Shown piece after piece: positions 34,207-57,547 of a DNA stretch of 64,000 nucleotides (positions are counted from its first letter, which is position 1; each line of letters begins with the position of its first letter). The position numbers and the translations under genes are program-made. Below the pieces are notes generated by a model. That model was not told the origin of the DNA. It was given only the letters and a program-made list of their open reading frames with translations, and made no database searches. The DNA lies in sequence record PV764602.1; one strand, written 5' to 3'.

Positions 34207-34775
34207 GTAATCGGGCAGATAAGGCAACAGGGTGCCATTTTGGCATCATCTGGACAACTACCGGAGTTTAGGGCAGTAAAGACCAGTATTTTCGTGCGAA
34301 CACCTTGCAGACCCCTAGGGCTTCCCCTTTGAACGAGTGGAGGCCCTTCTTTTTGACCGAAATATGACTGATTGACCATCTGAATGACCGGAGTTGCCAT
34401 TTTGGCACCTTCCTGTAGAGGCCGAAAGAAGATTTTCTTCTCGGACCTCGGGCATCCCCTCATGCGTTGCCAAAATGGCACCGTCGGAGTGTCGGAATAC
34501 ACCCGAAAATGGCCCTTGACGTGGTACCCCACAGGGCGAAAAATTTAGGGGCTCCAGGATGCGTCTAGACACCCGATCCTTGCCAAGGATTACCGAGTTT
34601 GACGCAAGGATTTTTCAAATATTTTGAGTCTGAGCAGGCCAATCCTGTAAATATTGGGTGTAGGCAAAACAGGGTGCCAAAATGGCAACATCACTGCCCT
34701 GTCCGACCAATTTTTCGACGCAGAACGCACCCTCCGTCCGAGGGTATGAATTTTTTGATGGCCGGGGGTCAAAAA
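34207..34775. other. Origin-like/regulatory intergenic region with four TGCCA-N3-TGGCA palindromes
   Basis: Palindromes at 34233, 34395, 34468, 34675; ATCCTGTAAATA at 34642; A/T tracts; local skew switch. Confidence 0.55.
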
Positions 34776-35306
34776 ATGACCAAAATTTCAGATATTTTAC
34801 CCGACGACGCAGTGACCGAAGTGGTGCGATCTGTTTTGCATCGCCTAGTGGTGGTCCGAGGCCTTTCCCTCTCCGAAATCATCAGGGACAACAGCGATAT
34901 TGATCCTGACCTGTTCGGGGCACGACTTTTCTCAGTGATCGCCAACACCGACGTGCAAATTCCTGCCTCACCGAAGGGGACCGAGGTAGCGACTCCAGAT
35001 TCAAGGGAGGACCGAGGGTACAAGAGGGGTGTGCGCGATTATGTCCTGTTCCGGCAGGACAAGAGAGGCAAGGGACGTCGGGAGTACCTGCACATCAGTG
35101 GGACTCTGTACGGGTGGCAGCAGTCCATACCCCAGGATGCGCTGACTCACTTTGAGAGCGTAGAGGCGGTCCAGAATCGGGTGAACGGGATGCGACTCGA
35201 TCCCGGCTACTTCTACTACACCGCTACCGCTGACGATCTGATAGATGAGGCGCTGCATAAGGTAGGGATAGTCCAGCATGCTATCGAGGTGCCGGATGAT
35301 GTTTAG
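34776..35306 (+). CDS. Hypothetical protein with KISDIL N-terminal module
   Basis: Start set at ATG 34776; N-terminus aligns with 42555 ORF. Confidence 0.6.
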   Translation: MTKISDILPDDAVTEVVRSVLHRLVVVRGLSLSEIIRDNSDIDPDLFGARLFSVIANTDVQIPASPKGTEVATPDSREDRGYKRGVRDYVLFRQDKRGKGRREYLHISGTLYGWQQSIPQDALTHFESVEAVQNRVNGMRLDPGYFYYTATADDLIDEALHKVGIVQHAIEVPDDV

Positions 35307-35421
35307 GATCAGCCCAGCCTTGTACGGGTTCTTCAAGGGGTGGACCGAGTTGGCTTCCGCTGTGGGAGTGAGGAAACGTGGGAAGAGTAAGTACACTAGG
35401 AAGAGGGGTAAGCGGAAATGA
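35296..35421 (+). CDS. 41-aa basic micro-protein ending RGKSKYTRKRGKRK (not in ORF track)
   Basis: Fills gap, ATGA-coupled to 35418; tail duplicated at 50734 ORF with synonymous changes. Confidence 0.75.
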   Translation: MMFRISPALYGFFKGWTELASAVGVRKRGKSKYTRKRGKRK

Positions 35422-35942
35422 AGTTGAGTGACATTCTGACTGAGCGGGATTTGATTGATCTGGCAGATGAGGTGTCGTCCGGGAACTACGAATCCCTGAT
35501 CGAGAAGCTGGGTGGGTATGAGTTTGAACCACCCTATACGATCGGGGTAGCAGTGGAGGCACACAAGCTTGCAACGTGCGCTACCGAGGATGATCCTCCC
35601 CTGATATGGGATAGCGTGTCGCCGGAGTCGATGCAGAAGCTAGGAGAAGGGCTGGCCGATAGTATGCACGCCCTGTCCATGCAGCCGGGTACCACGCGCA
35701 GGCTGCTAGGCAAGGCGGAGACAGACTGGAACCTACGAGAGGCCATGAATTTGGCTGAGGCTCAGGTGTTCCGTAGTATGTCAGCACTCAAGGCAGTACG
35801 GGTCGATGGGAATGGTGATCCCCTGCGAGGACCAGCATACGAGGCGGGCGAGTGGAGTCTGCGTAACTGGGAAGCAATCAAGCGTGACCAACAATCGTTC
35901 CCCGGATGGGGACTGCAAGGAGAACAAGATGCTCAAGATTGA
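35418..35942 (+). CDS. Hypothetical protein (MKLSDIL start)
   Basis: RBS GAGGGG, overlap chain. Confidence 0.6.
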   Translation: MKLSDILTERDLIDLADEVSSGNYESLIEKLGGYEFEPPYTIGVAVEAHKLATCATEDDPPLIWDSVSPESMQKLGEGLADSMHALSMQPGTTRRLLGKAETDWNLREAMNLAEAQVFRSMSALKAVRVDGNGDPLRGPAYEAGEWSLRNWEAIKRDQQSFPGWGLQGEQDAQD

Positions 35943-37569
35943 CTGTGACCGATACCACGAGGAAGTGGCCCCGCCGCTGACATTGGGTGGCATCATCGCA
36001 TGGGTGGAGCAGCAACCAGATGCCACTGTCTTCCATACCCTACACCATCCGCACAGCTACCGGGGCTACTACCAGTGTCTGGCCTTCGAGCCTGCGCCGG
36101 GCACCATGACCAAGGCTGAACTGCTTAGCCTCCTTCGGTCCTGCAACGGCGTGCCCTACGGTGGGTACAAGGGCGGGTTCTACTTCATGGGCCTCAACAC
36201 CGACTGCTTCCTCGCCAACTGGAGTGAGACGGGTTCGGCCATGAGCATGCCGTGGCTGGAGAACGAGCTTCGGGTACAGGAGGTAGAGGAGCCGGAGGGT
36301 ACAGCGCGCGCATCACGGGATGCCGTAGCCGATGTACAATCAGAGACAGCGGTGGAGGAAGCACGGGATGCGCGCGCTGTACCCGTAGACCCTGTGTCCA
36401 CCCATCATGTGCATCGGGGTGCAGAGTCTCTGCCCTGCTACTGCGCACGCACGACAGACCACCCGAATGGCCATGAGCTAATGTGGGAGAACCCAGCACC
36501 TCATGCTGCTGGCGCACCGTCGCCCTCTGCCCAAATGAAGATCGGTAGCCTGCCTGCTGATAGCATGGACCCTGTGGACCACCTTGAATCCCTGCCTCCC
36601 GATATGCGCCTAGGCTCTGCTGGCTACCTCGGTTATCTTGACTACCTCGACTACAGGGACAATCCGCCAATGACCACCAGTGATCCCAACGATTTGGTTG
36701 AACGTTGCAACAAGTACATGGCGCTGCGTGAGCGAGCCGAACAGGGCTTGCATGCGGTGGCGCGCGCTGCACAGGAAATGCGGGCGGTGTCTCAGCGTGG
36801 CAAAGACGCAGCCATTGTCCTGACCGAGACCCTCCCTTCTGAGCAGATGCGCGAGAGCATTCGGTCTACCGTTGCGTTCTTTGCTGCACAGGAGGAGCGC
36901 ATGACCGACATTCTCAACACCCTTGCCTCAGCGCGCGTCGATGCTTTGCAGGAGGGAGACTGTCGGAGGATTGATGGCCAGTGGTACGTCTGCACTGATC
37001 CCGACATGGCGCGCTTCGTTACCTTTGATGGGCTGGAGACTCCGTGCACCAACCTCAAGCGAGCGTATGATGCTCTTCGGTTCTACGTTGACGCCAGCGA
37101 CACTGAGTTGGAGGAACGTGGGATTGATCGTGCTGAGGCACTGCGTCTTGCCCGTGATGCTGAGCGCGCGCTGCACGAACACAACCACCTGAGCAAGGAC
37201 CCAGATGACGTGTGGTGGGCCGAACCCCTGCCGCTTACTGCTATCGACCACGGTGCTGTCGTTCCCCTTGATACCGAATGGCAGGTGACCACCAATCCGG
37301 TGCCTGCCGATGCTGATCTTGGTGGCGAGGATGGTCCCGTGTGGGCTGTGATGCTGCCGTTGTCCTTCGGGCCGAACGCCTACTACGATCCCTCGCCTCT
37401 GATCCAGCGTTTCAACCGAGGCTCCCACGTCCACTTCTTCCGTAAGGCTACGGCCACGAAGATCCGCGATCACTTCAACGCAATGGTGCGCACCAGCACT
37501 GAACAACCGTTGGCCGAGATCGTTCACCACACCCTACAGCGACACGTACCCGGAGACAACAATGCTTGA
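35929..37569 (+). CDS. Mosaic hypothetical protein
   Basis: RBS AGGAG + ATG 35929; N-terminal PHSYRGYY..LAFEP...GYKGG phage motif. Confidence 0.6.
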   Translation: MLKIDCDRYHEEVAPPLTLGGIIAWVEQQPDATVFHTLHHPHSYRGYYQCLAFEPAPGTMTKAELLSLLRSCNGVPYGGYKGGFYFMGLNTDCFLANWSETGSAMSMPWLENELRVQEVEEPEGTARASRDAVADVQSETAVEEARDARAVPVDPVSTHHVHRGAESLPCYCARTTDHPNGHELMWENPAPHAAGAPSPSAQMKIGSLPADSMDPVDHLESLPPDMRLGSAGYLGYLDYLDYRDNPPMTTSDPNDLVERCNKYMALRERAEQGLHAVARAAQEMRAVSQRGKDAAIVLTETLPSEQMRESIRSTVAFFAAQEERMTDILNTLASARVDALQEGDCRRIDGQWYVCTDPDMARFVTFDGLETPCTNLKRAYDALRFYVDASDTELEERGIDRAEALRLARDAERALHEHNHLSKDPDDVWWAEPLPLTAIDHGAVVPLDTEWQVTTNPVPADADLGGEDGPVWAVMLPLSFGPNAYYDPSPLIQRFNRGSHVHFFRKATATKIRDHFNAMVRTSTEQPLAEIVHHTLQRHVPGDNNA

Positions 37570-37936
37570 CCTTAGCAATGACGAACTGGCCAATGCCCTC
37601 AACAGCATCAACATGCAGAACTTCACTCTGTCCTCGGGCACAGAGGCGATGCAGGGTATCGCACGTGGACTCCGCGCTTTCAGTTCTACGCGTAGCGCCT
37701 TGCATGAAATGCACCTCACCACCGAAGCTCTGCATGCTGAGTGGACGAAGAAGCTGGAAGAGGCCAGCCATGAACAGCGCGCTCACGTACTGGCGATCCT
37801 GAGTTCCCTTGCACAACAGCGCGCGGGTCTGCACAAAGCGCTGACCACCATCACGCACGTCGAGGACATGATCCTCTCCATCGCCACTGAACTGACGGGC
37901 GTTACCTTCCCCGCGGAGGCCGCAGAATGGGTCTGA
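37562..37936 (+). CDS. Hypothetical helical protein
   Basis: RBS GGAG, overlap chain. Confidence 0.6.
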   Translation: MLDLSNDELANALNSINMQNFTLSSGTEAMQGIARGLRAFSSTRSALHEMHLTTEALHAEWTKKLEEASHEQRAHVLAILSSLAQQRAGLHKALTTITHVEDMILSIATELTGVTFPAEAAEWV

Positions 37937-38085
37937 GTGATTGCCCTAAGTGTTGGGACACGCCGTGTGGCTGCGGCCACCAGTACGAACAGTGGACAGA
38001 AGAACGTCTGCGTGACCACATCAAGATGCTGGAAATGGTGCTTGCCAAGAAGCAGGCGCAACGATACAAAGGAGAGTCCAAGTGA
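37927..38085 (+). CDS. 52-aa Cys-rich micro-protein MGLSDCPKCWDTPCGCGH... (not in ORF track)
   Basis: RBS GGAGG; CxxC..PCxCxH; couples to GTG 38082. Confidence 0.7.
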   Translation: MGLSDCPKCWDTPCGCGHQYEQWTEERLRDHIKMLEMVLAKKQAQRYKGESK

Positions 38086-38354
38086 GCATGTATCGAGTTG
38101 TGTTGCAGCCTGTATGCAGGGCGTTCGGCGGTTGGGTGAGCGACCCGGATCGTGTTGAGCGCAGTCACCTGATGAACACCACGGATACACTGGCGGTGTT
38201 GCAGTTTGACGACAACGGCGAATCCACCGGCAAAACGTTGTCCCAGACCTACCTGTTCCTGTGCCTCGGTGACATTGTGGAACTCCACGACGACCAAGGC
38301 AGCATCGGACACCACCGCGTACTGGACGTGATGGATGCGGAGGTAGCGCAATGA
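38082..38354 (+). CDS. Hypothetical protein
   Basis: RBS AGGAG; ends TGA, frame stays open to 38513. Confidence 0.6.
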   Translation: MSMYRVVLQPVCRAFGGWVSDPDRVERSHLMNTTDTLAVLQFDDNGESTGKTLSQTYLFLCLGDIVELHDDQGSIGHHRVLDVMDAEVAQ

Positions 38355-38513
38355 ACGTGGTACAACATCGGGAAGCTCAACCACCATGAAGGCGAGGTCA
38401 TCCTGCATCCCGGCACCAAGTACAAGGTATCGCACCACTCCCAGCACACTGATCCCGACAGCGGGCACATCTACCACGTGGTCCACCTGACCGCACACAG
38501 TCCGAAGCACTAA
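38355..38513 (+). pseudogene. Start-less C-terminal fragment of a His-rich ADP-ribosyltransferase (or readthrough extension)
   Basis: TWYNIGKLNHHEGEVILHPGTKYKV...HVVHL aligns to HEAETVLHHGNKFKV...HVTHVKL of the 40992 ART. Confidence 0.6.
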
Positions 38514-38517
38514 TCCG

Positions 38518-38553
38518 AAGGGCCTATCCTGCTAACGTGGGGTAGGCCCTTTT
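38518..38553 (+). terminator. Rho-independent terminator
   Basis: AAGGGCCTATC...GGTAGGCCCTT then TT. Confidence 0.75.
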
Positions 38554-38595
38554 GCATAGCCCAGCGATAGGTTCCAATTTCGTGCAAGTTGTCCC

Positions 38596-38632
38596 TGAAT
38601 CGAACCTGAACGGCAGCTGAACGAAAATGAAC
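38596..38632 (+). promoter_or_regulatory. Helically phased TGAA(C/T) direct repeats above the -35
   Basis: Starts at 38596, 38607, 38618, 38628. Confidence 0.55.
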
Positions 38633-38637
38633 AGTGG

Positions 38638-38666
38638 TTGACAGGGGGATAGGGTCCAGGCATAAT
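38638..38666 (+). promoter_or_regulatory. Sigma70-type promoter
   Basis: TTGACA-17 bp-CATAAT in a 235-bp intergenic region after a terminator. Confidence 0.8.
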
Positions 38667-38748
38667 AGGCTTGTGGTAGGGAAACAAGGGCGTCAGCCCA
38701 CCGGGACCCACCTATCGGAACCCCTAGTCAGATACCTCGGAGAATCTC

Positions 38749-39093
38749 ATGAAGCGCAAGTCCCCTCGGAACCGTCCCCTGATCGCTGAACTGATGCCGG
38801 TACGCGCTGCCGCCGAGCGCATGGACCTTCGGACCGCCAACCTGTCCAGCCACCTGATGACGGTGGAGTTCCCGGAGCAGGACGACTCCCAGGTTATCCT
38901 GACCTTCATGCTGAACAAGAATGCCCAGCTGGTGGCCTCGGTGGAACTGGAACGTGCGGGTCATGTGCAGTGCGCCACCCCTTACCTGCGCGGTGCCATG
39001 CTTCGGAACAGCCTGAGCGCCACGCTTGACGACTATGACGTGGAGCGCGACCGCATCGCCTCGGTCATCGCCTTCCTCGACAGCATCGTCTAA
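38749..39093 (+). CDS. Hypothetical (putative early) protein
   Basis: RBS GGAGA; first gene after the sigma70 promoter. Confidence 0.65.
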   Translation: MKRKSPRNRPLIAELMPVRAAAERMDLRTANLSSHLMTVEFPEQDDSQVILTFMLNKNAQLVASVELERAGHVQCATPYLRGAMLRNSLSATLDDYDVERDRIASVIAFLDSIV

Positions 39094-39110
39094 CCCTTCG
39101 GAGCCCCCTC

Positions 39111-39473
39111 ATGAACGCCAACGTCCTCGCCCTGATCGTACAGACCGCCGTTGAACTGGGACTGGTGGTCCAGCATACCGCCAACGACATTACTGTCCTG
39201 TTCGATGAATCGGAGATGGAAGCGGCAGGCATGTTGGTGCAAGCTGCTCCGGCCCTTCGATTTGTGTATGGCCCTGTCCTGACCGCCTACCCCGAAGCTC
39301 ACATGGGATACCACGAAGGGGAGTTGCAGGCCATCGGGTTCGCCACCAAGGGCGTTCGGGGCGACGAACTGCGCGACTGCATCGAAAAGATGAAGACCCA
39401 CTTCAAGCCCGAAGCCGTCATGCCCCTCTTTACCTTCCTCGGCCTGCTGAACCGCAACGCCGCCAACCACTAA
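39111..39473 (+). CDS. Hypothetical (putative early) protein
   Basis: RBS GGAG. Confidence 0.65.
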   Translation: MNANVLALIVQTAVELGLVVQHTANDITVLFDESEMEAAGMLVQAAPALRFVYGPVLTAYPEAHMGYHEGELQAIGFATKGVRGDELRDCIEKMKTHFKPEAVMPLFTFLGLLNRNAANH

Positions 39474-39483
39474 GGAACCGACC

Positions 39484-39603
39484 ATGAAGATCAAGACCAT
39501 CCTGCTGACCGCCGTTGCTATCTCGGCCATCCTTTGGGCCGTCGCCATGATTGGCAGCGCCCCGTTCGTCGGCCCCACCCTTTCCACCACCGTCCGCGCC
39601 TGA
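39484..39603 (+). CDS. 39-aa hydrophobic, signal-peptide-like micro-protein (not in ORF track)
   Basis: RBS TAAGGA; MKIKTILLTAVAISAILWAVAMIGSA. Confidence 0.65.
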   Translation: MKIKTILLTAVAISAILWAVAMIGSAPFVGPTLSTTVRA

Positions 39604-39623
39604 CCCAACCAGCACCCAAAGGA

Positions 39624-39917
39624 ATGACCATGAGCAAGTACCCCGCAATCGCCAACCTCGATCACGTCATCACTCAGACCGTCCAGTTCGGGCTGGATGA
39701 CTACGCGGGCCAGACGGATCACGTGCCCGAGGCCGTCGCCCACAGCATCGCCTACATCGCCAGCTGCTTGATGGCCCAGCACACCACCAATGGTTACCTC
39801 GGCGTGCCCACCGACGCCGCCCTGAACGCCCTGCAAATCACCACGGTCCACATGAGCTACGAAGACCGACTGGCGCTGACCCGCGCCTTCATTGCAGAAT
39901 ACGGCGGCGTCAAGTGA
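39624..39917 (+). CDS. Hypothetical (putative early) protein
   Basis: RBS AAAGGA. Confidence 0.65.
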   Translation: MTMSKYPAIANLDHVITQTVQFGLDDYAGQTDHVPEAVAHSIAYIASCLMAQHTTNGYLGVPTDAALNALQITTVHMSYEDRLALTRAFIAEYGGVK

Positions 39918-39976
39918 TCCGCATCCTCGCCCTGCTGATCGTCACCCTGTCCACCATCCTGACCTACCGGAACTAA
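39914..39976 (+). CDS. 20-aa hydrophobic micro-peptide MIRILALLIVTLSTILTYRN (not in ORF track)
   Basis: GTGA overlap; exactly fills the gap to ATG 39978. Confidence 0.45.
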   Translation: MIRILALLIVTLSTILTYRN

Positions 39977-39977
39977 C

Positions 39978-40310
39978 ATGAACGCCAAGACCAAGACCAC
40001 TTCGGACGTTGATGCACAGCGCGATGCCATGCAGAAAGCCGCCGCAGCCGAGCAGTTCCACCGCCACTCCCTGCTGCAAAGCATGACGGCCGACGGTCCC
40101 CTGTTCGTTCCTATGGACAAGGCCCACACCTTCGGTCTCGCTCCCGCTGGCCGTGGCGGTGCCGCCCACCTTGACGCGCTGGAATCCCTCGGCCTCATGG
40201 CTGCGCTGGTGCCCCACGCAACCAACCCGGACACATGGGGCGGCTACCTCGTCTGCCGGTCCAGCTGGGCACGCGAGCAAGTAGGTCCGGACGACGCCAA
40301 GTTCCTCTGA
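39978..40310 (+). CDS. Hypothetical (putative early) protein
   Basis: Co-directional chain. Confidence 0.6.
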   Translation: MNAKTKTTSDVDAQRDAMQKAAAAEQFHRHSLLQSMTADGPLFVPMDKAHTFGLAPAGRGGAAHLDALESLGLMAALVPHATNPDTWGGYLVCRSSWAREQVGPDDAKFL

Positions 40311-40991: not shown

Positions 40992-41780
40992 ATGAGAGTC
41001 CTGTCTACCGTAGGGTCCAACAAGTTCGTCTGGACCGATCATCACCTAGACTACACCGCACCCGAAGACGATTCGCTATCTAGTGAGACTGCTTCCTCCG
41101 AAGAACACGCTCATGCGTTGAAACGTACTTCCTTACATCCCGAAGACCAAAAAGGGCACAAGGCACACGTAACTCGGGCACGCCAAACATCCGAACACGT
41201 TGGCCATGCAGTAGATCACTACAGAAGTATCGGACACAACGATTTTAACCGAGAACTCCGCCATCCCTCCCACAAGGGTAAGATCAAAGGCAACGGTGAC
41301 TACAACTTCACCGACCATTCGCTACATGATCTGCATAAAGGATTGGGGCACGCTACCAGTTATCAGCTGAAACACAAGACCGCTGTGTACCGTGGGGTGG
41401 GCGAAGCCGCCCACAAGATCAAGGCGCTCAAGAAGGGAGACACCTTCACTGACCACGGGTACACCAGTACCAGCCATAGCCCCTCAGTAGCCATTTCTTC
41501 CTTCGGTCATAGCGAGCACACGGGTACGCATCGAGAGCATCACGTCGTCAAGATTCATTTGCCCAAAGGCTCCAAGATTATGCACGTACCTCACCACGTT
41601 GATGATGGCCTTACCCGGCATGAGGCAGAAACGGTGCTGCACCACGGTAACAAGTTCAAGGTCTTGGGTCACAGCGTCCACGATCTACCGGGTAGTCCGT
41701 CCGGACACTCTTCCTCATTCGATAGCACCAAGCACCGGGTGCACGTAACCCACGTCAAGCTAGTAAAGCAACGCAAATGA
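40992..41780 (+). CDS. His-rich ADP-ribosyltransferase (R-S-E clade, VIP2/Alt-like)
   Basis: VYRG, GYTSTS, HEAE(ExE)-TVL..G.KFKV; about 39 His in 262 aa. Confidence 0.85.
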   Translation: MRVLSTVGSNKFVWTDHHLDYTAPEDDSLSSETASSEEHAHALKRTSLHPEDQKGHKAHVTRARQTSEHVGHAVDHYRSIGHNDFNRELRHPSHKGKIKGNGDYNFTDHSLHDLHKGLGHATSYQLKHKTAVYRGVGEAAHKIKALKKGDTFTDHGYTSTSHSPSVAISSFGHSEHTGTHREHHVVKIHLPKGSKIMHVPHHVDDGLTRHEAETVLHHGNKFKVLGHSVHDLPGSPSGHSSSFDSTKHRVHVTHVKLVKQRK

Positions 41781-41787: not shown

Positions 41788-41810
41788 AGGCATCCGAAAG
41801 GGTGCCTTTG
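41788..41810 (+). terminator. Terminator with GNRA loop
   Basis: AGGCATCC-GAAA-GGGTGCCT-TTG. Confidence 0.7.
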
Positions 41811-41834: not shown

Positions 41835-41860
41835 GGTGCCATTTTGGCATCCTGTAAATA
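41835..41860 (+). promoter_or_regulatory. Palindromic operator fused to ATCCTGTAAATA box
   Basis: GGTGCCATTTTGGCATCCTGTAAATA. Confidence 0.8.
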
Positions 41861-41973
41861 TAGGGACAAAGGAGGCGCTATGCCCCTCAAAGAACGGGTC
41901 CAACGGGGTGGCCCTTTTATCCCCGACTTCGTAGACGTTCGCTACATCACCCATAGCCCAACAAGGAAGCCCC

Positions 41974-42558
41974 ATGAGCCCGAAGCTCTGCATCATGAAC
42001 GACACCCACAACCAGCAGTCGGCTGTGATCGTCACCCTCCAGAAAGACGTGATTGCCCACACGATAAAGTTTGCCTACGAGGGTGATCCGGAGGGCCCTC
42101 GTTTCCGCCTGCCCACTGATACCGTAAGTCTGATGCGTCTGCGTGGCCTGATCGACAGCGTGCTTGAACCGAACCTGCTTGATCCTCGCGTGGTTCACGG
42201 TGACACCCAACGTCAGCTGACCGTTCATGCTAATGCCCTGCGTCAGCTGGCCGACCGTTGGGCAACTGATCGTGACTACAAGGGCAGCCCAGTTGACGAC
42301 ATTCGCGCGCTGATCGGCGACACCGCACAAGGTTCTGTGCCCGCTCTCAATCCCAAGTACCGGGAGGCGTTGAAGTTTGCTATAGGTCATCTGGACATGA
42401 GCGACCAACCCGAGTACGGACAGCTGCAAGAACTGTTGGCCATGACCGAGCGTGGGGAAGGTGCACGTAACCCGTGCGCGCACTGCGATGACGGCAAGGT
42501 CATCAACGAGAACTTCCGTACTGTTGAGCCGTGCCGCCACTGTGAGGACGCCAAATGA
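41974..42558 (+). CDS. Hypothetical protein with C-terminal CxxC...CxxC
   Basis: RBS AAGGA; CAHC...CRHC. Confidence 0.6.
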   Translation: MSPKLCIMNDTHNQQSAVIVTLQKDVIAHTIKFAYEGDPEGPRFRLPTDTVSLMRLRGLIDSVLEPNLLDPRVVHGDTQRQLTVHANALRQLADRWATDRDYKGSPVDDIRALIGDTAQGSVPALNPKYREALKFAIGHLDMSDQPEYGQLQELLAMTERGEGARNPCAHCDDGKVINENFRTVEPCRHCEDAK

Positions 42559-48941: not shown

Positions 48942-49262
48942 ATGCCATACTCTACCCGTAATCGTGGCCTCTACATCATCATCGCGCTGCTCACGGGCAT
49001 GCTGGGGTTCCACAACTTCTACGCAGGACATTTGAAGAAGGGTGGCCTCCAGTTCTTGGCCACCGTGGTCAGCATCCTGATTATCCCCGTGACTGCCATG
49101 CTGTCTGTCCTGATTTCTGGCGGTGACAACGGCGGTGAGGCGTCCAAGCTGGTGATGTTCGCTGTGGTTGCTGCTCCTGTGCTGGCAGTGTGCAATGCAA
49201 TCAGCGTGATCCTGGACATCGTTGAAACCAAGTCTGACGGCTATGGCGATTTGATGCGTTGA
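48942..49262 (+). CDS. TM2-domain membrane protein
   Basis: IALLTGMLGFHNFYAGH.KKG.LQ; RBS AAGGA. Confidence 0.8.
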   Translation: MPYSTRNRGLYIIIALLTGMLGFHNFYAGHLKKGGLQFLATVVSILIIPVTAMLSVLISGGDNGGEASKLVMFAVVAAPVLAVCNAISVILDIVETKSDGYGDLMR

Positions 49263-49293
49263 AGAAAAGGCCCCAATTGGGGCCTTTTCTTTT
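49262..49293. terminator. Perfect 30-bp palindrome, probable bidirectional terminator
   Basis: AAGAAAAGGCCCCAATTGGGGCCTTTTCTT then TT. Confidence 0.85.
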
Positions 49294-49310
49294 GCCGGAA
49301 ATAATGAGAG

Positions 49311-49337
49311 GTTGCCAAAATGGCAATCCTGTAAATA
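49311..49337 (+). promoter_or_regulatory. Palindromic operator fused to ATCCTGTAAATA box
   Basis: GTTGCCAAAATGGCAATCCTGTAAATA. Confidence 0.8.
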
Positions 49338-49357: not shown

Positions 49358-49750
49358 ATGATCCCAGACTTTGACCTGTCCAAAGCAGTGCGCCAAACCA
49401 AGTTCGTGGGCCCCAACTCGAAGACAGGTAACTGCACTGAGGCGGCTATTGCCACCCTGCTGCAAATTCCCCTAAGCGCCGTTCCCGAATTCAACCGTAG
49501 CGGAGACGACGCATCTGACTTTTGGGAGAGCGTTGAAAGCTTCTTGGTTGAGCACGGGCTCTACATCAAGTACACCACCAAGCACAAACAGGGTGTGTAT
49601 CTCGTAAGCGGTCCCACGGTAAGAGGCCGAGGGCATCACACTGTCATCTACAAGGATGGACAGTTGGCGTGGGACCCGCATCCCTCCGACGCAGGCGTCA
49701 CCGAAGACGTGTGGTGCCTACACCTTCAAGACACGGATCCATACGCATGA
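49358..49750 (+). CDS. Papain-like (C39-like) cysteine peptidase fold protein
   Basis: GNCTEAAIA (Cys), HHTV (His), WDP (Asp); RBS AGGAGG. Confidence 0.6.
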   Translation: MIPDFDLSKAVRQTKFVGPNSKTGNCTEAAIATLLQIPLSAVPEFNRSGDDASDFWESVESFLVEHGLYIKYTTKHKQGVYLVSGPTVRGRGHHTVIYKDGQLAWDPHPSDAGVTEDVWCLHLQDTDPYA

Positions 49751-51481: not shown

Positions 51482-51629
51482 GCTTCTGCATCGACCGTTG
51501 TTCATGCCCAAGGACGCAATCAAGTGTAGCTACTGCGGCTACTACAACATGCCCAATACGGAACGCTGCCTTGGCTTCCTGTGTGGTGCCAACCTGCGCC
51601 CTACCGGCGGCGGATTCGTGGAGTTCTAA
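51468..51629 (+). CDS. 53-aa zinc-ribbon micro-protein (not in ORF track)
   Basis: CSYCG...C...CG; TAATG-coupled to next gene. Confidence 0.6.
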   Translation: MNLCELLHRPLFMPKDAIKCSYCGYYNMPNTERCLGFLCGANLRPTGGGFVEF

Positions 51630-51796
51630 TGACTAGCGCGCCTGAAACCACAAGCGTTACAGCCCGTATCGCACAGTCCATCCGTGAGCAGATCGGTACG
51701 GACTTGCCTACGATCACCCTGATGAATGGACAGATCATTGACATTCAAGAACTGGCGCGTGCTATCGCAGCGCGCCTCGGACCTCCCAAGCCATGA
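51629..51796 (+). CDS. Hypothetical protein
   Basis: TAATG coupling. Confidence 0.5.
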   Translation: MTSAPETTSVTARIAQSIREQIGTDLPTITLMNGQIIDIQELARAIAARLGPPKP

Positions 51797-52038
51797 ACAC
51801 ATACATCTACCGACCGTACATCCAAGGCCCCGGCACTCACATGCTGACGGTTGCGACAGATAGGCAGTCTGCCGTGGTCAACATTGTGCGCAACCTCAAG
51901 CACTATTTCCCCGATGACGTTGCCAAGTTCAAACCCGAAGCTCTGACCTCTATGGTCAACGGGCAAACGTCCATCCTCCTGATGAACGATACCGCTGTCA
52001 TCCTGCCGCCTGATAGCACCGTGTCGATTGGAGTTTGA
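51793..52038 (+). CDS. Hypothetical protein
   Basis: ATGA overlap. Confidence 0.55.
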   Translation: MNTYIYRPYIQGPGTHMLTVATDRQSAVVNIVRNLKHYFPDDVAKFKPEALTSMVNGQTSILLMNDTAVILPPDSTVSIGV

Positions 52039-52288
52039 CGTGAGCTATTCAGTGCTGTTCCGGCCGCAGCGTGGCGACTTTCAAACTAGCTACGCTGAGA
52101 CTGTGCGAGTACGTAACACCCCCGAGGGCATTGCTGCACACCTGACTCAGATACTCGGTCAGGTGGTGGGCCCTTCGCAAATCACATTCGAGGATGCAGG
52201 CTTTGATAAGCGCCTCGGTACCCACAATCAATACGTTCTTCTCGACGGCCAATGCGTAGGCTACGTTTGGGAAGGCGACGAAATCTAA
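52028..52288 (+). CDS. Hypothetical protein (start uncertain)
   Basis: Fills gap. Confidence 0.45.
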   Translation: MEFDVSYSVLFRPQRGDFQTSYAETVRVRNTPEGIAAHLTQILGQVVGPSQITFEDAGFDKRLGTHNQYVLLDGQCVGYVWEGDEI

Positions 52289-52299
52289 AGGACAAGACC

Positions 52300-52602
52300 A
52301 TGCTTCCGCAAGCCCGTTACCTCGTTGCTTTCAGCAACTGCTACTTCCACTTCACAGACACAATGATGCCGCTGCGCATTCTTGAAAACTGCGACGTGGC
52401 CATTCAGATCAAGCCGAACATGGAACTAGCCCTCATCAAGGTTCGTACCGACACTGCGCTGCTCAAGCTGCTGAATGCCGAGACTTCAAACGAAACCAAA
52501 GACCTGTACGACGGCAAGCCTCCGAGGGAAGACAAGCGCGACTGGCGTGCGTTCAAAATCGAGTGCATCAACAGCCAGCCCATCCCGGCTCCACTCATCT
52601 AA
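52300..52602 (+). CDS. Hypothetical protein
   Basis: RBS AAGGA before ATG 52300. Confidence 0.55.
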   Translation: MLPQARYLVAFSNCYFHFTDTMMPLRILENCDVAIQIKPNMELALIKVRTDTALLKLLNAETSNETKDLYDGKPPREDKRDWRAFKIECINSQPIPAPLI

Positions 52603-52612
52603 GGGGCCGCGC

Positions 52613-53065
52613 ATGGGAACTTACATTGGTGGATGCGCTGAACGAAAGACTGACTCGGGTTGGGAGGTTGTAGAGATTCACCTGCCGTGGCTGCTGGACT
52701 ATCAGTGCTACGAATACTTCGGGTGGCTCGGCGGCGTGCGAAACTATGCAGCTGTGTCCTCGGTTGCCGAACGACGTGGCCTACCTGCCGACGTATCCAA
52801 GGAGGCCGAGGTTGAATACGATCACTGCTACGACGCTAGTTCCCCTAGTTATGTCACCGTGGAGGAACTGCTTGCCATCGACTATCAGCAGTTGGTTGAG
52901 AACCGTAGATGGGATGGCACGCATCTACGCTCAGGGACTTTAACGTGCGAGCCGGGTCAGGGCGAGACGATGACCCTTGAAGAATACCTCGGTCCGGAGC
53001 GCGTGGCCGAGATTCGTTCCCTGCCAGATAAGGGTATCGACCGACTTGTGTTTTGGTTTAGCTGA
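52613..53065 (+). CDS. Hypothetical phage protein
   Basis: MG..I, Y..F..L.GVRN, RGLP.D.S, S.VTVEEL, RLVFWF. Confidence 0.65.
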   Translation: MGTYIGGCAERKTDSGWEVVEIHLPWLLDYQCYEYFGWLGGVRNYAAVSSVAERRGLPADVSKEAEVEYDHCYDASSPSYVTVEELLAIDYQQLVENRRWDGTHLRSGTLTCEPGQGETMTLEEYLGPERVAEIRSLPDKGIDRLVFWFS

Positions 53066-53073
53066 GGATCGTC

Positions 53074-53352
53074 ATGTTCGAGAAAATCAAACGCTACTTG
53101 TTCGTCCAGTTGATGCGGTACTTCATCCACGACAAGATCAAGTGGCAGGCAATCTTGCACGTCTACTGGATTGAATACCGCAAGCGTTACACCGAAGAGA
53201 CGACGCCCACTTCCCTTGACAGCATCTACACTGTCTTGAAGGAGGCATCCGAACGTGAGTTGGCTGCCAGCGCACGTGATCGCAAGATTCGGGAACTCAA
53301 TCAGCAAGTAGCACAAATCACTAGCGAGAACTATCACGACTATTGGGACTAG
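53074..53352 (+). CDS. Hypothetical protein
   Basis: RBS GAGG. Confidence 0.6.
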   Translation: MFEKIKRYLFVQLMRYFIHDKIKWQAILHVYWIEYRKRYTEETTPTSLDSIYTVLKEASERELAASARDRKIRELNQQVAQITSENYHDYWD

Positions 53353-53355
53353 ACC

Positions 53356-53739
53356 ATGAAAGAGTTAGGCCATAGCGGCATAATGATTTATCCGCTTACT
53401 CCGTTGCAGTCCGAAGCCTCAAAGATTCTCGCGGAAGAATGCGTAGAACTTGCGAAGGAATGCAGCAAGATCGAGCGTTGCGGTTTGCCATTCATTGCGA
53501 CTGGTGAAGCACTCACGTTCAAGGAAAAGTTCACTGAGGAAATTGCGGACGTCCTCACGCTGATCGACGAGGCAATCGCTGCCGGGTTGGTAGATCGCCA
53601 GCGCCTTGTCCAAGTGCTTGACAACAAGCCCGCACGTCTGCGCAAGTGGACGACCCACCTTGGCTACGCTCCAGTGCGTTACGCCAATCCCCTGCTCCTC
53701 AACTTCAATTCTTCTGACGACACTTCGGATCGAGACTGA
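53356..53739 (+). CDS. MazG-like NTP pyrophosphohydrolase
   Basis: LAEECVEL..E.SK..R.G ... EEIADV. Confidence 0.7.
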   Translation: MKELGHSGIMIYPLTPLQSEASKILAEECVELAKECSKIERCGLPFIATGEALTFKEKFTEEIADVLTLIDEAIAAGLVDRQRLVQVLDNKPARLRKWTTHLGYAPVRYANPLLLNFNSSDDTSDRD

Positions 53740-53741
53740 CT

Positions 53742-54197
53742 ATGACCATTCGCTATATCCACCTGCGCTCCCCGGTAATCCCGTACCTGCAAGAAACGAG
53801 TGAACACTTCGGCGGCATCACTGTGGCCTACGAACTGTGGACCACCAAGGACCCGACCGGCGTCTCCCACCTGTTCGCCAACGTAGCACTGGCCCTGTGC
53901 GATCACCGGGATCGTTACAACAAGGTGGAAGGCCGTCGCATTGCTTCCGAGCGCCTGCGCAATCGTCTCTCGGTGTCTCCGCTGCTCGCGTTCACCACGC
54001 ACCTTGGCTTCGCTGCTATGGAAGAGGAAGTTGGCCACGGCGTCGGTTCCTATATGGACCGCTTCTACGCCAAGCTGACGCGCGACGCTTCGGGTGGCAT
54101 CGACGTGAACGAACGCGAAATCAAGGTCACCAAGATTCTGACCCAAGTTGCCATCCAGCATGGCGAGGTTTGCTTCTACTCTTGGGGAGGCAAGTAA
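53742..54197 (+). CDS. Hypothetical phage protein
   Basis: GGITVAY...A.C...D.YNK.EGR.IA..RL. Confidence 0.65.
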   Translation: MTIRYIHLRSPVIPYLQETSEHFGGITVAYELWTTKDPTGVSHLFANVALALCDHRDRYNKVEGRRIASERLRNRLSVSPLLAFTTHLGFAAMEEEVGHGVGSYMDRFYAKLTRDASGGIDVNEREIKVTKILTQVAIQHGEVCFYSWGGK

Positions 54198-54203
54198 TCG
54201 AAA

Positions 54204-54219
54204 GGGGCCTTCGGGCCCC
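54204..54219 (+). terminator. UUCG hairpin (weak U-tract)
   Basis: GGGGCC-TTCG-GGCCCC. Confidence 0.5.
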
Positions 54220-54239
54220 ATTCCATTGAGGGACATACC

Positions 54240-54566
54240 ATGCAATATACAGGCGGCTGCGGACCGATGCTAATCAGTAGCAGTACAAAGTGGCTCACCA
54301 AGATTCACCTCTCCCTAGAGGACGGCAAATGGAAGGCCACATGGAAACCAACTAACGGGTACCACCCAAAGGACTGCCCTTCTTTCGTGTTCAGCGCTGC
54401 GACTCCGGTGGAAGCCTACGCTACTACGATGGCCGAAGCGTCCAACTACCTGCTGTGTATTTTCTGGCAACCGCCTCGGACATACAACGGAAGGTACAAG
54501 CCTGCGCATCTTGCACTGCTCGATGCAATCACGCTCCAAGCTAAGAGGGATCGCAATGGGAATTGA
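54240..54566 (+). CDS. Hypothetical protein
   Basis: RBS GAGG. Confidence 0.55.
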   Translation: MQYTGGCGPMLISSSTKWLTKIHLSLEDGKWKATWKPTNGYHPKDCPSFVFSAATPVEAYATTMAEASNYLLCIFWQPPRTYNGRYKPAHLALLDAITLQAKRDRNGN

Positions 54567-54975
54567 GAACGGTGTAGGACTGAGCTACAACGACTACCGA
54601 GCAATGAATGGTCGCCAGATTGTGTGGCGATTGGTAAAGGAAGCTAATGGCAGCTTCACTCACATTCTGGAATTCAACGGCAAGCGCGGCATCTTCCCCA
54701 GCGACGATCCCGAGGATATTGAGAAGCATTCCAAGTACCTCAACGCAGAGTCCTACCTGCGCGCTATTAACGTGGTCAGCAATGGCGACGGTACTGCAAC
54801 CGGGACAGGCCACCTGATCGTGGCAGAAGACTACTTCACCTTTGCGCTTGCAATGGTTCCGATGGTTGTTCGCCAAGGCAGGCACAAGGGCAAGAATCTC
54901 CCGATTAAGAAACAAGTGTGCGTGTTCAAGGCAGGTAAGATCGCCGACTACCTACATTCCGAGGCCACGGTATGA
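54556..54975 (+). CDS. Hypothetical protein
   Basis: RBS GAGG before ATG 54556. Confidence 0.55.
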   Translation: MGIENGVGLSYNDYRAMNGRQIVWRLVKEANGSFTHILEFNGKRGIFPSDDPEDIEKHSKYLNAESYLRAINVVSNGDGTATGTGHLIVAEDYFTFALAMVPMVVRQGRHKGKNLPIKKQVCVFKAGKIADYLHSEATV

Positions 54976-55217
54976 GCAAGATCGACGTACAGGAAATCAT
55001 GCGCGAAGTGCGTGAGAACCTAGACCGACTGCAAGCGTGCAAGGGCCACAAGTGGCCGAAGATCGAACGTGAGAAACGTTCGCCGTTGGAGAAGTACACG
55101 TGCACTGAATGCAAGGGCAAGGTCGGCTTCACTGAAATGCTCTACTACGTGCGTGGTGCTGTGCACTACGGCGGTGTAGACCCCAACACAATCTCCCCGG
55201 AGTGGCCGTTCAAATGA
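54972..55217 (+). CDS. Small Cys/His protein
   Basis: C.GH.W...Y.CTEC. Confidence 0.6.
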   Translation: MSKIDVQEIMREVRENLDRLQACKGHKWPKIEREKRSPLEKYTCTECKGKVGFTEMLYYVRGAVHYGGVDPNTISPEWPFK

Positions 55218-55429
55218 GTGATAGCTTTGTAGTGCAACAGAAGCTGGGAACGAAGTCGCTGTATTTCACCACCATTGATCGAGGTGGTGCCGTGTGGTCC
55301 GAAGGTGATCTGGCCAAGGCCACTCAGTTCGCTTCGGAAATCAATGCACAGGACATTGCTGAATTCATCGCCGAACGTGCCGTTGGAACTTGGGAGGTAG
55401 TGACGTATGCGACCGCCGCAGCCGCGTGA
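55214..55429 (+). CDS. Hypothetical protein
   Basis: ATGA overlap. Confidence 0.55.
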   Translation: MSDSFVVQQKLGTKSLYFTTIDRGGAVWSEGDLAKATQFASEINAQDIAEFIAERAVGTWEVVTYATAAAA

Positions 55430-55949
55430 AGTTTGGACCCACACAAGCGGTAGGGACTATACTGTCCTGCTGATCGCTAACCAGCATTCAGAGAATCCGA
55501 AGTACCCTCCGACCGTCGTGTACGAAGGTGACAACGGTAGGGTGTGGAGTCGCCCGCTTAGTGATTGGCATCGCTCCATGACGTACAAGGCGGAGTGTCT
55601 GCACAATTGGGTAGATGCGCGCAACAAGTACATCGACTCGGGTGAGGTATGCCTGACCTGTTTCAAGATGCGTGCTGGCAACCCGACTACGGAAGGATTC
55701 AAGATCAACTGGATCGACCCGGAATTGTCCTTGGTGCATGCCAAGCCTATAACGGTTATGCCGCAGGACGTAAAGAAGACCCTCAATGATTGGATCGAAA
55801 AGGAGTACCCTGTTCTATCCAACATGCGCCGCTTTGTAGGCAGGTATGAAGAAGGTCAAGGCTACCCGGTGGTGCTCGACGGCTGCATGATGGGGCGAGT
55901 GGCTGTTGCTTACTTTGATCGTGACCCTTCGGACTATCTCTATGACTAA
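55407..55949 (+). CDS. DUF1653-like N-terminal domain protein
   Basis: W.H.SG..Y.VL.IA...E....TVVY....G.VWSRPL..W. Confidence 0.6.
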   Translation: MRPPQPREVWTHTSGRDYTVLLIANQHSENPKYPPTVVYEGDNGRVWSRPLSDWHRSMTYKAECLHNWVDARNKYIDSGEVCLTCFKMRAGNPTTEGFKINWIDPELSLVHAKPITVMPQDVKKTLNDWIEKEYPVLSNMRRFVGRYEEGQGYPVVLDGCMMGRVAVAYFDRDPSDYLYD

Positions 55950-56361
55950 GCCCGGCATCTTTCTAATCCAGCGCGAGCTAGAAGGAAGGCTCCTCATTCA
56001 ACTTCTCAGCGAAGGTGGCTCCCAGCAAATCGCCCGTGCCAACTTTTATGCGGACGACCGTGGCGCGTGGGTGTTCAACGTGCTAGTGCATGAGCCGTTC
56101 CGTAGAATGAAGATGGGTAGGATGCTGCTAGAGGGAATCGCAACCTACCTCCGTGATCCTGACAAGACTATCAGCTTCAAGGTAGACCACGACAACGAGG
56201 TGGCGCTGAAATTCTACAGCAGCTTGGGGTTCAAGCGAACCGGAGTGTTGCAGAATTCGAGAGGCGCTGGGCTAGACGAAGTAGTCATGGAGGCTCGGAT
56301 ACGAAACACCACGGTGAGCCCACCAACCATGAACAAGTGGACTTATCAAATCACGGTATAG
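55942..56361 (+). CDS. GNAT family acetyltransferase
   Basis: VFNVLVHEPFRRMKMGRMLL, V..DN..AL.FY..LGF. Confidence 0.85.
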   Translation: MTKPGIFLIQRELEGRLLIQLLSEGGSQQIARANFYADDRGAWVFNVLVHEPFRRMKMGRMLLEGIATYLRDPDKTISFKVDHDNEVALKFYSSLGFKRTGVLQNSRGAGLDEVVMEARIRNTTVSPPTMNKWTYQITV

Positions 56362-56388
56362 AGTGCCATTTTGGCAACCCTGTAAATA
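56362..56388 (+). promoter_or_regulatory. Palindromic operator fused to ACCCTGTAAATA box
   Basis: AGTGCCATTTTGGCAACCCTGTAAATA. Confidence 0.8.
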
Positions 56389-56415
56389 TCAGATACCTAA
56401 CACACTAGGACTGTC

Positions 56416-56985
56416 ATGACTGCCCCGATCAGGCTATACGACCCTTTCGTCGTCACCTACTACGTGCAGGACAAGGAAGCTTTGATGGCCAACCATCGGT
56501 CCCTGTTCTCCGTTGATGAAGTAAACAAGATGCGCTTCCCAATCGTCATCGGTATGGATGACGTGCCTCAGTGGATGAATGCACAGGAGTACCGGGACCA
56601 TCTAGGCGTCCGTATGCAGGCGCTCAATCGCTACCTGTTCCCTCCGGACTTTAACCTAGATCGCATCCTCTATGTAACCTTGGGCGATCAGCAGGTACCG
56701 ATTCAGCTTACGCACGCTGAGAGCGTGTTGTTGCATTGCCTGATGGAAGCTAATCGGGTAGTGAGTAACGGCGAACTCTTGAATTTGCTGGAGTCGCTGC
56801 CCACACGCAATGGTAAGGAGCGGAATTACACCAAGAGCACGCGCTCTAGCCTAGTGCACGTCATGACGTATCGGATACGGTCGAAGGTGCGCCGCATCGG
56901 TGGCCCTACGCTGCTTGAGGTTATGCACGGTGTAGGCTGCCGTTACGTAGGTGGTTCCAACTTCTCTATGGCACAGGTGAATTGA
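56416..56985 (+). CDS. Transcription regulator with OmpR/PhoB-type winged-helix C-terminus, no receiver domain
   Basis: LTHAE..LL..LM....VVS..EL...V.V...RIR.K.......L..M.GVG.RY. Confidence 0.7.
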   Translation: MTAPIRLYDPFVVTYYVQDKEALMANHRSLFSVDEVNKMRFPIVIGMDDVPQWMNAQEYRDHLGVRMQALNRYLFPPDFNLDRILYVTLGDQQVPIQLTHAESVLLHCLMEANRVVSNGELLNLLESLPTRNGKERNYTKSTRSSLVHVMTYRIRSKVRRIGGPTLLEVMHGVGCRYVGGSNFSMAQVN

Positions 56986-56986
56986 A

Positions 56987-57505
56987 ATGAGCGATCCGAT
57001 GACGGGCACCTTGCCCGCAGTAGAAGAACTGAAAGACGATATGGGCTTCAACAATGTTGGCCCGACCTTGAGCAGCAAGCTGTTTCAAGTGTGTGCACAA
57101 GAACTGCGTGAGTGGTATCAGAAGCGAGGTCACAAGACCTACCCGGCTGACGCTCCGTTCCTGACACGCGAAAAGAAGATGCCGGCCAACACACGGCTGA
57201 TTCTGACCTACCCATCCAAAGGCCGCTACGTTGTTTTGCGCCGCGATCCGGGCAACCTCACTCCGCCGACAGTCGAGTATTCACTGGCGCGATTCGCAGT
57301 GGTGTCGGCGAAGGCACTCAAGAAGCTCCACCCGGAAAGCACATTTGTCGTAGCACGTGCTCTGCGTTCGGAATGCTGGTGGGAGTATCCTCACTACCCA
57401 CGCAACGCACGTCGCAAGATTGCTCCACGCGACCTGAATCCCGTTGATCTGGCAGACTCTTACGCTGTCATCTTCACCACCGACCTTACCGCCAAGACGC
57501 CCTGA
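56987..57505 (+). CDS. Hypothetical protein
   Basis: ATG 1 nt after upstream stop. Confidence 0.6.
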   Translation: MSDPMTGTLPAVEELKDDMGFNNVGPTLSSKLFQVCAQELREWYQKRGHKTYPADAPFLTREKKMPANTRLILTYPSKGRYVVLRRDPGNLTPPTVEYSLARFAVVSAKALKKLHPESTFVVARALRSECWWEYPHYPRNARRKIAPRDLNPVDLADSYAVIFTTDLTAKTP

Positions 57506-57513
57506 TTGCATAG

Positions 57514-57547
57514 GGTGCCAAAATGGCAACGGTGCCAAAATGGCACC
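57514..57547. promoter_or_regulatory. Two abutting 17-bp palindromic operators
   Basis: GGTGCCAAAATGGCAAC + GGTGCCAAAATGGCACC. Confidence 0.8.

Follow-up and report, generated by a model that had tools for sequence, protein, structure and literature searches.

What reads a short, symmetric DNA sequence that a virulent phage repeats nine times within one block of its genome? The question is raised by the 13-bp palindrome TGCCA-(AAA/TTT)-TGGCA of Xanthomonas phage PhiXhv-15, and was followed in a window comprising bases 1-64000 of record PV764602.1. PhiXhv-15, whose host is X. hortorum pv. vitians, is a virulent jumbo myovirus with a genome of 228,725 bp. Its close relatives in the phage collection are four only, Ep026, Ep032, PhiXhv-12 and PhiXhv-16, and the next nearest phages share less than 40% terminase identity. 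As judged from sequence comparison, very strong purifying selection acts on the palindrome, a symmetric DNA element. It is found in the 34-58 kb block only, where it is physically coupled to a promoter-like box, CCTGTAAATA, and predicted helix-turn-helix (HTH) domains of the Xre type adjoin an identical element in many bacterial operons. The explanation that we favour, with slightly better than even confidence, is that the palindrome serves as the operator of a phage-encoded dimeric HTH regulator, for which the protein gp58926 is the most likely candidate.

Nine exact copies of the core occur in the window against 0.00 expected from 100 shuffles, and they begin at precisely the positions given by the initial annotation (34233, 34395, 34468, 34675, 41837, 49313, 56364, 57516 and 57533). 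No variant with one mismatch exists in the window or in the whole 228,725 bp genome, and the genome-wide motif scan that had been suggested as a check returned the nine window copies as the only ones in 228.7 kb, all between 34.2 and 57.5 kb. The central triplet is AAA or TTT in every copy, as first described. The proposed flank consensus, GKTGCCA...TGGCAHC, describes most copies but fails at 56364 (AG on the left) and 49313 (AT on the right); flank symmetry is imperfect, the ideal form being GGTGCCA-AAA-TGGCACC. All copies are intergenic, as had been claimed, after two annotated coding starts are moved. The annotated starts at 49259 (a TTG) and 57540 run across palindromes, the ATG codons at 49367 and 57567 are both preceded by Shine-Dalgarno sequences, and family matches (phrog_5845 and CYTH) agree better with the shorter proteins that begin at these codons. 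The four-copy cluster at 34.2-34.7 kb and the tandem with 17 bp spacing are both real. The palindrome is a real, strongly conserved element and a predicted protein-binding site; its copies and the associated features are collected in Table 1.

Comparison with other phages bears on the nature of this site. Ep026, PhiXhv-12 and PhiXhv-16, which diverge from PhiXhv-15 by merely 1.5-3%, keep eight to nine sites; in PhiXhv-12 and PhiXhv-16 the left half of site 34395 is replaced, and the remaining sites are kept in all four close relatives. A divergent relative, contig ERR6221067_1691 (69 kb, of which 48 kb was read), was reached through its homologue of gp58926. It is syntenic with PhiXhv-15, with coding DNA 70-77% identical and intergenic DNA that does not align. 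Conservation in related phages, the expectation named beforehand, extends to this contig, which carries nine exact palindromes in the layout of PhiXhv-15. Over eight orthologous sites the arms are identical at 80 of 80 positions, versus 42% identity in the 28 nt upstream, and the centres differ only by two complete AAA/TTT flips, at copies 1 and 3 of the cluster. The three-site cluster is spaced 161/73 bp in the relative and 162/73 bp in PhiXhv-15, and the tandem and its 17 bp spacing are kept despite changed spacer letters. The comparison reveals strong selection for the arms and for the presence of an A-tract, and none for the orientation of the A-tract. Such arm conservation combined with AAA/TTT flips is exactly what one would predict if a dimer bound a symmetric site in DNA.

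The palindrome could also act as a hairpin, either in RNA (a processing or stability hairpin, or an attenuator) or in DNA (a hairpin promoter of the N4 type, or a hotspot at which recombination shuffles cassettes). A stem of 5-9 bp is possible at each copy, and the tandem (57512-57550), as a single strand, would form one long interrupted hairpin (-24 kcal/mol) just before the CYTH gene's Shine-Dalgarno sequence. The sites lie at terminator/promoter junctions, one of which is the point of a large insertion in Ep026, and the flipped centres themselves suggest hairpin-mediated inversions. However, both loop orientations occur on one transcribed strand and flip between orthologues, so an RNA loop would not be conserved; the stem energies vary from -5 to -14 kcal/mol, and the 5 bp arms alone are invariant, the flanks that would extend the stem being subject to drift. 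Sites upstream of promoters would mostly not be transcribed, an Rfam search of the window gave no match, and no giant N4-type virion RNA polymerase is annotated in the genome. A role as a hairpin is therefore very improbable. The insertion in Ep026 (segment ~28297-29135) measures ~840 bp, lies exactly at the terminator/palindrome junction corresponding to window positions 49275-49314 and has a ~40 bp duplication at its flanks; regulatory junctions of this kind seem to be places where gene cassettes are swapped.

The box CCTGTAAATA occurs genome-wide in 13 exact and five one-mismatch copies, always intergenic and oriented with the downstream genes, which include those for clamp loader, primase, topoisomerase, helicase and Pol III. 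The palindromes at 41837, 49313 and 56364 end 1-2 nt before such a box and the half-site at 5248 abuts another, as the initial annotation had seen; in a fourth full pairing, copy 4 lies downstream of box 34644. A full palindrome stands within 45 bp of all four exact boxes in the 34-57 kb block versus none of the nine elsewhere (Fisher p=0.0014). Terminator-like hairpins with T-runs, also reported at the outset, precede 5248, 41837 and 49313. In the divergent relative, terminator-palindrome-box units occupy orthologous positions, and site and box are kept before the gp56416 orthologue. The relative has an extra unit of this kind (contig position 42494) where PhiXhv-15 (54198-54239) has a terminator only, its fourth cluster site is degenerate and paired with a degenerate box, and it also has one box without a palindrome; operator and promoter appear to be gained or lost together. 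The connection between palindrome and promoter-like box is thereby borne out.

The box does not match the sigma-70 -10 consensus, and PhiXhv-15 encodes a diverged protein of the sigma-70 family (13734..14750). From position and orientation we infer that the box, which resembles the T4 late element TATAAATA, is a phage-sigma-dependent promoter, and the sigma-like protein probably reads it. Promoters that lack the palindrome are also present in the block, namely a sigma-70-type promoter at ~38.64 kb and a variant box at 61590, so the operator marks a subset of the block's promoters. The former lies in a 394 bp gap (38355-38748) in which a strong terminator is followed by a near-consensus, host-type TTGACA-N17-CATAAT without a palindrome. 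The latter, AGTGTAAATA, lies in the gap at 61575-61622, which is all that PhiXhv-15 has at the place where PhiXhv-12 carries an additional 192-aa gene (167926..168504) annotated "DNA binding protein".

The 540 bp non-coding region that holds the first four copies had been described as origin-like, a label that is an interpretation rather than an observation; no origin features were found there. The reading behind it is that the four sites form a replication origin at which one initiator-like protein couples replication to middle-gene transcription. It draws on the clustering of four sites in non-coding DNA that is conserved among relatives, and iteron-type initiators can indeed autoregulate at inverted repeats. 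Against this, the weak cumulative GC skew shows no inflection near 34 kb, and an AT-rich unwinding element is missing from 34.2-34.8 kb (AT 44-56% versus 44.5% for the genome). The supposed "chromosomal replication initiator protein DnaA" of the annotation (24749-26026) is a clamp-loader AAA+ protein (DNA_pol3_delta2, E=7.5e-29) without a DnaA domain match, and the genes flanking the cluster have no family matches and include no initiator-like gene. One cluster site (34395) is lost in two relatives, and the fourth is degenerate in the divergent one. The replication-origin reading is unsupported and highly unlikely to be correct. Of the initial proposal that one dimeric phage protein binds promoters and origin alike, as DnaA does, the dimer part agrees with the conserved arms and flipped centres, which suggest a symmetric complex, whereas the coupling to replication finds no support.

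Being conserved and holding hairpins and a second palindrome, the region is nevertheless functional non-coding DNA. In our reading it comprises auxiliary operators clustered upstream of the 34644 promoter, perhaps together with a small RNA. The second palindrome, ATCCTTGCCAAGGAT (34576-34590), belongs to a segment that even the 70-77% relative has kept, and another factor may bind there. A short distance upstream, the C-rich intergenic region 33453-33717 (265 bp) contains exact short direct repeats, two copies each of TCCCTCCGGCAA and TAGGGGCAGGGA.

The palindrome is not private to PhiXhv-15; bacterial and phage systems that are unrelated to it use the identical core as an element of operator type. 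Viral contigs were scanned with a 15-mer version, which gave mostly single chance matches, and the core was then counted per locus; a second scan added more loci. Contigs with 7-14 core copies were found, and 36 of 214 viral loci hold at least three. Prominent among them is an uncultured large-phage clade (GC 34-46%, contigs up to 224 kb) in which pairs of cTGCCAAAATGGCAg, 29 bp apart, follow terminator hairpins and stand before nearly every small early gene. Downstream of the pairs, at a median distance of 55 nt, lie UP-element/TTGACA-N17-TAGAAT promoters that belong to small genes, a promoter being found downstream of 33 of 64 pairs and upstream of none of the 64. Between pair and sigma-70 promoter lie one to three copies of AGCAAATnTyGTGCCAAA, whose reverse complement, TGGCAC-N5-TTGCT, is a sigma-54 consensus pointing against the genes. 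In PhiXhv-15 the sigma-54 site (TGGCAC-N5-TTGCW) has intragenic chance matches only and none that is intergenic, and a sigma-54 role of the motif was rejected for this phage. BLASTP and cluster-level profile searches over sampled flanks of ~10 kb found no protein common to PhiXhv-15 and the 36 motif-rich viral loci, and the search for cultured relatives of the clade returned only tRNA and GDP-mannose dehydratase similarities.

Tandem 13-mer pairs were found at no fewer than 120 loci in a scan of bacterial genomes, with start-to-start spacings that cluster at 21-22, 31-33 and 41-42 bp, that is, at two, three and four helical turns. Two contexts dominate among the matches listed. The first is the HTH-MNT/HepT operon: at 16 or more low-GC bacterial loci, pairs lie 8-73 bp upstream of an HTH_3-MNT antitoxin gene. 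Its product of ~158 aa combines an N-terminal HTH_3 domain, with the recognition helix P-[LIMF]-R-T-Y-x-R-[YF]-E, and an MNT nucleotidyltransferase domain, and the HepT RNase gene comes next. The flanks of these pairs are often gGTGCCAAAATGGCACc, as in PhiXhv-15, and at viral HTH-MNT loci the copies are degenerate and 33 bp apart, with a further weak copy over the -10. From this arrangement the pairs look like the autoregulatory operator of HTH_3-MNT/HepT operons. The second context is formed by heat-shock genes. Helically phased pairs precede putative ClpB and DnaK genes and HSP20 genes in metagenome-assembled genomes of Longimicrobiales/Gemmatimonadota and on some Bacteroidales contigs, HSP20 genes on Bacteroides-labelled contigs included, ClpB and DnaK being recognised from N-terminal sequences only and HSP20 by Pfam match; these pairs may represent an undescribed heat-shock operator. 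An Xre open reading frame (ORF) beside one pair in Longimicrobiales was not recurrent and was set aside as a third HTH/operator pairing. A literature search with the 13-mer string gave only unrelated primer matches and no publication of the sequence as an operator, and a search for the MntA/HepT operator gave nothing useful, the HTH-MNT operator not being found in published work.

This wide distribution opens the possibility that a host protein, for instance an Xre-type regulator or antitoxin, binds the sites, and that the phage uses it for timing or titrates it. The identical 13-mer in cellular systems across many phyla, both at HTH-MNT/HepT operons and before ClpB/DnaK/HSP20 genes in Longimicrobiales, fits such a proposal, as does its presence in the uncultured clade, whose sampled flanks yielded no shared phage protein. 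The proposal is nevertheless quite unlikely. No Xanthomonas record appears among the genome matches listed, the HTH-MNT type was seen in low-GC lineages and not in Xanthomonadaceae, and suitable HTH proteins are encoded by the phage itself next to the sites.

Which of these phage proteins would bind? Family scans offer few DNA-binding candidates, namely gp8168, gp56416 and gp58926. The candidates named initially (8168, 58072, 58926 and 56416) include the one preferred here, gp58926, and the next two, gp58072 and gp56416. gp58926 matches PDB entry 2AUW, deposited as hypothetical protein NE0471 (E=1.2e-5), and its AlphaFold (AF2) model, with a predicted local distance difference test (pLDDT) score of 90.6, is a five-helix Xre-type HTH with a long C-terminal helix. 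Its Foldseek neighbours are 2AUW, HTH_3 regulators, DdrO, SinR, ImmR, HipB and C.BclI. The HTH profile of HTH-MNT proteins ranks gp58926 first among all six-frame ORFs of PhiXhv-15, although at E=0.26, and hhalign aligns this profile with the gp58926 family over the whole HTH at 89.7% probability (E=1.8e-6), versus 0.4% for gp58072, 0.8% for gp56416 and 36%, over helix 2 only, for gp8168, an Xre/HigA-like protein (phrog_1381, E=1.4e-6). gp58926 shares with HTH-MNT the recognition-helix signature R-T-x-x-R-Y, and the pattern RT[IY]x[RKMQ][YW] occurs in two PhiXhv-15 ORFs only, gp58072 and gp58926, both encoded in the operon that directly follows the tandem. The divergent relative matches PhiXhv-15 at 87% identity in gp58926, the best-conserved protein of its neighbourhood, at 81% in gp58072 and at 33.5% in gp56416; an invariant operator fits gp58926 and gp58072 better than gp56416. 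No gp58926-family relatives were found in viral contigs. Its only distant homologue is a DUF2442-HTH protein, NE0471-like, paired with a DUF4160 gene, and upstream of that operon lies GTGCACGAAATGCAC, with the GTGC-N7-GCAC frame of the phage 15-mer, a single post-hoc example.

Binding by gp58072, alone or with gp58926, is a less probable arrangement, to which we would give little weight. Its N-terminal signature contains the R-T-I start of a recognition helix, and its conservation and its place in the operon right after the tandem suit the role; yet it has no significant match in Pfam, PHROG or PDB, and its alignment with the HTH-MNT domain is negligible. Binding by the OmpR-type winged-helix protein gp56416, which would autoregulate from the palindrome and box upstream of its own gene, is unlikely as well. 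Site and box lie immediately upstream of its start in both phages, a Trans_reg_C match (22 bits) falls below the cut-off, and the orthologue carries an RGVGYRY wing. But the protein has diverged to a third of identity between phages whose operator arms are 100% identical, and it has no similarity to the HTH found beside the identical bacterial operator. Direct repeats, not 13 bp palindromes, are moreover the usual targets of OmpR/PhoB domains. An AF2 model of gp56416 from the single sequence was unusable (pLDDT 36) and hence uninformative, and no homologues were found in viral contigs or by indexed protein search. A small ORF at 41880..42086, which has a good Shine-Dalgarno sequence, was rejected as a candidate, its product being of low complexity and without a family match.

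Under the favoured reading, then, a phage HTH dimer would bind the palindrome, most likely gp58926, with gp58072 or gp56416 as alternatives. If TAAATA is the -10-like element, three promoters would have the site at about -30 to -17 and the fourth would have it at about +15 to +27, and a bound dimer would occlude or block RNA polymerase and so repress the units concerned. The tandem, and the three sites at 34.2-34.5 kb that have no box, could act as auxiliary or autoregulatory operators through cooperative binding or looping, and the C-terminal helix of gp58926 could mediate dimerisation. With the gp58926 gene in the operon directly after the tandem, negative feedback may follow, the block being shut off once the regulator accumulates. 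Since some boxes lack a palindrome, promoter function does not depend on it, which speaks against activation. The picture as a whole has several features of an HTH repressor and its operator: a site repeated in non-coding DNA beyond chance and kept while its flanks drift, and an HTH of matching symmetry encoded nearby.

Several points weigh against this reading. The conservation seen in the close relatives, at 1.5-3% divergence, is without statistical power. The geometry from -30 to -17 derives from the position of the box, and the tandem lacks a recognisable box and may therefore not sit at a promoter. Activation instead of repression is possible, by analogy with the bacterial and uncultured-phage systems, in which strong sites lie upstream of the -35. 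gp56416 holds the classic autoregulator position directly behind a site. The link between gp58926 and the HTH-MNT domain is suggestive and weak: as a single sequence gp58926 reaches 26% probability in hhalign, comparable to gp8168, the R-T-x-x-R-Y pattern was partly derived from the candidates themselves, and an exhaustive protein search with gp58926 yielded three homologues, none of them HTH-MNT.

It is tempting to hypothesize, though doubtful, that one Xre-HTH specificity class (R-T-x-x-R-Y/W reading TGCCA-A3-TGGCA) has been recruited repeatedly: for autoregulation of HTH-MNT/HepT, for a heat-shock regulon of Longimicrobiales/Gemmatimonadota (ClpB, DnaK, HSP20), for the early-promoter cassettes of the uncultured phages and for the middle-gene block of PhiXhv-15. 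In a bolder version, phages would carry the antitoxin HTH or its operators to silence HepT/MntA-type defence or to sense its activation.

Table 1. Palindromes, promoter-like boxes, candidate binders and neighbouring features of the PhiXhv-15 window (boxes outside the window also listed)
Feature	Position	Strand	Sequence	Remarks
Non-coding region	34207..34745			540 bp; copies 1-4, two hairpins/terminators, second conserved palindrome ATCCTTGCCAAGGAT
Palindrome copy 1	34231..34247		GGTGCCATTTTGGCATC	first of the four-site intergenic cluster
Palindrome copy 2	34393..34409		GTTGCCATTTTGGCACC	left half replaced in PhiXhv-12 and PhiXhv-16; intact in divergent relative
Palindrome copy 3	34466..34482		GTTGCCAAAATGGCACC	73 bp from copy 2
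Palindrome copy 4	34673..34689			21 nt downstream of box 34644; upstream of gene 34746..35306
Palindrome copy 5	41835..41851			between terminator 41788-41807 and box at 41851
Palindrome copy 6	49311..49327			between terminator ~49265-49293 and box at 49328
Palindrome copy 7	56362..56378			abuts box 56379; upstream of winged-helix gene 56416..56985
Palindrome copies 8 and 9 (tandem)	57514..57547			17 bp start to start; 61 bp gap before CYTH/HTH operon
Half-site	5248..5255		TTTTGGCA	abuts box at 5257; follows terminator
Boxes in the window	5257, 10417, 24735, 34644 (34644..34653), 41851, 49328, 56379	+ (34644)	CCTGTAAATA	
Boxes elsewhere in the genome	67462, 78348, 83961, 114799, 141110, 221418	- (78348, 83961, 114799, 141110)	CCTGTAAATA	
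gp58926	58926..59159	+		77 aa; predicted Xre-type HTH with long C-terminal helix; leading candidate binder
gp58072	58072..58479	+		135 aa; signature SRTIAMWQSGK of an Xre-like HTH near the N-terminus; second candidate
gp56416	56416..56985	+		predicted OmpR-type winged helix; directly downstream of palindrome and box; third candidate
ADP-ribosyltransferase	40992-41780			ADPrib_exo_Tox, E=2e-8; just upstream of the 41837 site

The block that bears the palindromes, 34.2-57.5 kb, is a run of small plus-strand genes whose products include an ADP-ribosyltransferase, a CYTH protein and NUDIX/MazG enzymes, that is, a block of small accessory and host-takeover genes. The ADP-ribosyltransferase beside the 41837 site, which recalls T4 Alt/Mod, is consistent with a host-takeover role of the block. 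The operator marks about five transcription units with ~75 accessory genes. The paper describing the PhiXhv phages does not mention promoters, palindromes or regulation, and gene regulation in jumbo phages that do not form a nucleus is almost unmapped; a concrete, testable circuit is offered here, composed of a putative phage-specific promoter box, a predicted operator and three named candidate regulators. The PhiXhv phages are under development for biocontrol of lettuce leaf spot, so that knowledge of the timing of the host-takeover block is of practical use. That the operator is identical with the one at HTH-MNT/HepT operons and with the putative heat-shock operator of Gemmatimonadota was unexpected, and it provides candidate regulatory motifs, so far unreported, for those systems.

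Among known systems, the closest parallels are the Xre/Cro-CI-type repressors of phages and toxin-antitoxin modules (434 Cro, SinR, HipB, HigA and the C-proteins of restriction-modification systems), which likewise combine a short palindrome with an A/T-rich centre and multiple operators, including tandem or auxiliary ones, at sites that overlap promoters (here, the inferred boxes); the five-helix Xre fold of the gp58926 model has such proteins as structural neighbours. Unlike these, PhiXhv-15 is a virulent jumbo phage without a lysogeny module, its promoters would be built on the phage-specific CCTGTAAATA box rather than on sigma-70 elements, and its nine perfect cores are spread over 23 kb. 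HTH-MNT/HepT operons share the identical core and often the same 17-mer, GGTGCCAAAATGGCACC, with pairs directly upstream, and the recognition-helix signature of gp58926 is that of the MntA-type antitoxin. Profiles of the HTH-MNT and HepT clusters, run against all ORFs of PhiXhv-15, found no significant MNT or HepT domain, the best HTH-only match being gp58926 (E=0.31), so the system is not a toxin-antitoxin system. gp58926 further differs in being a stand-alone HTH whose detectable relatives are NE0471-like DUF2442-HTH proteins.

Two more distant analogies concern the layout of the regulon and its promoters. The KorB operators (OB) of plasmid RK2 are twelve near-perfect 13 bp palindromes read by one global regulator, a ParB-family protein; they resemble the present sites in length, in numbering about ten perfect copies, of which some lie at promoters and others far from them, and in forming a replicon-wide regulon, but sequence and biology differ, and a non-exhaustive genome scan identified no ParB-like protein in PhiXhv-15. 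T4 late promoters, in which TATAAATA is read by gp55, parallel CCTGTAAATA as a -10-like A/T octamer without an obvious -35, in a phage with its own diverged sigma-70-family protein. In contrast to T4, however, the CCTGTAAATA boxes precede replication and accessory genes and not structural genes, and a subset of them carries an abutting operator, an arrangement that, to our knowledge, is not described for T4 late promoters. Taken together, these comparisons place the system, as predicted here, among HTH regulators with palindromic operator regulons, a known kind of circuit in a poorly studied jumbo phage.

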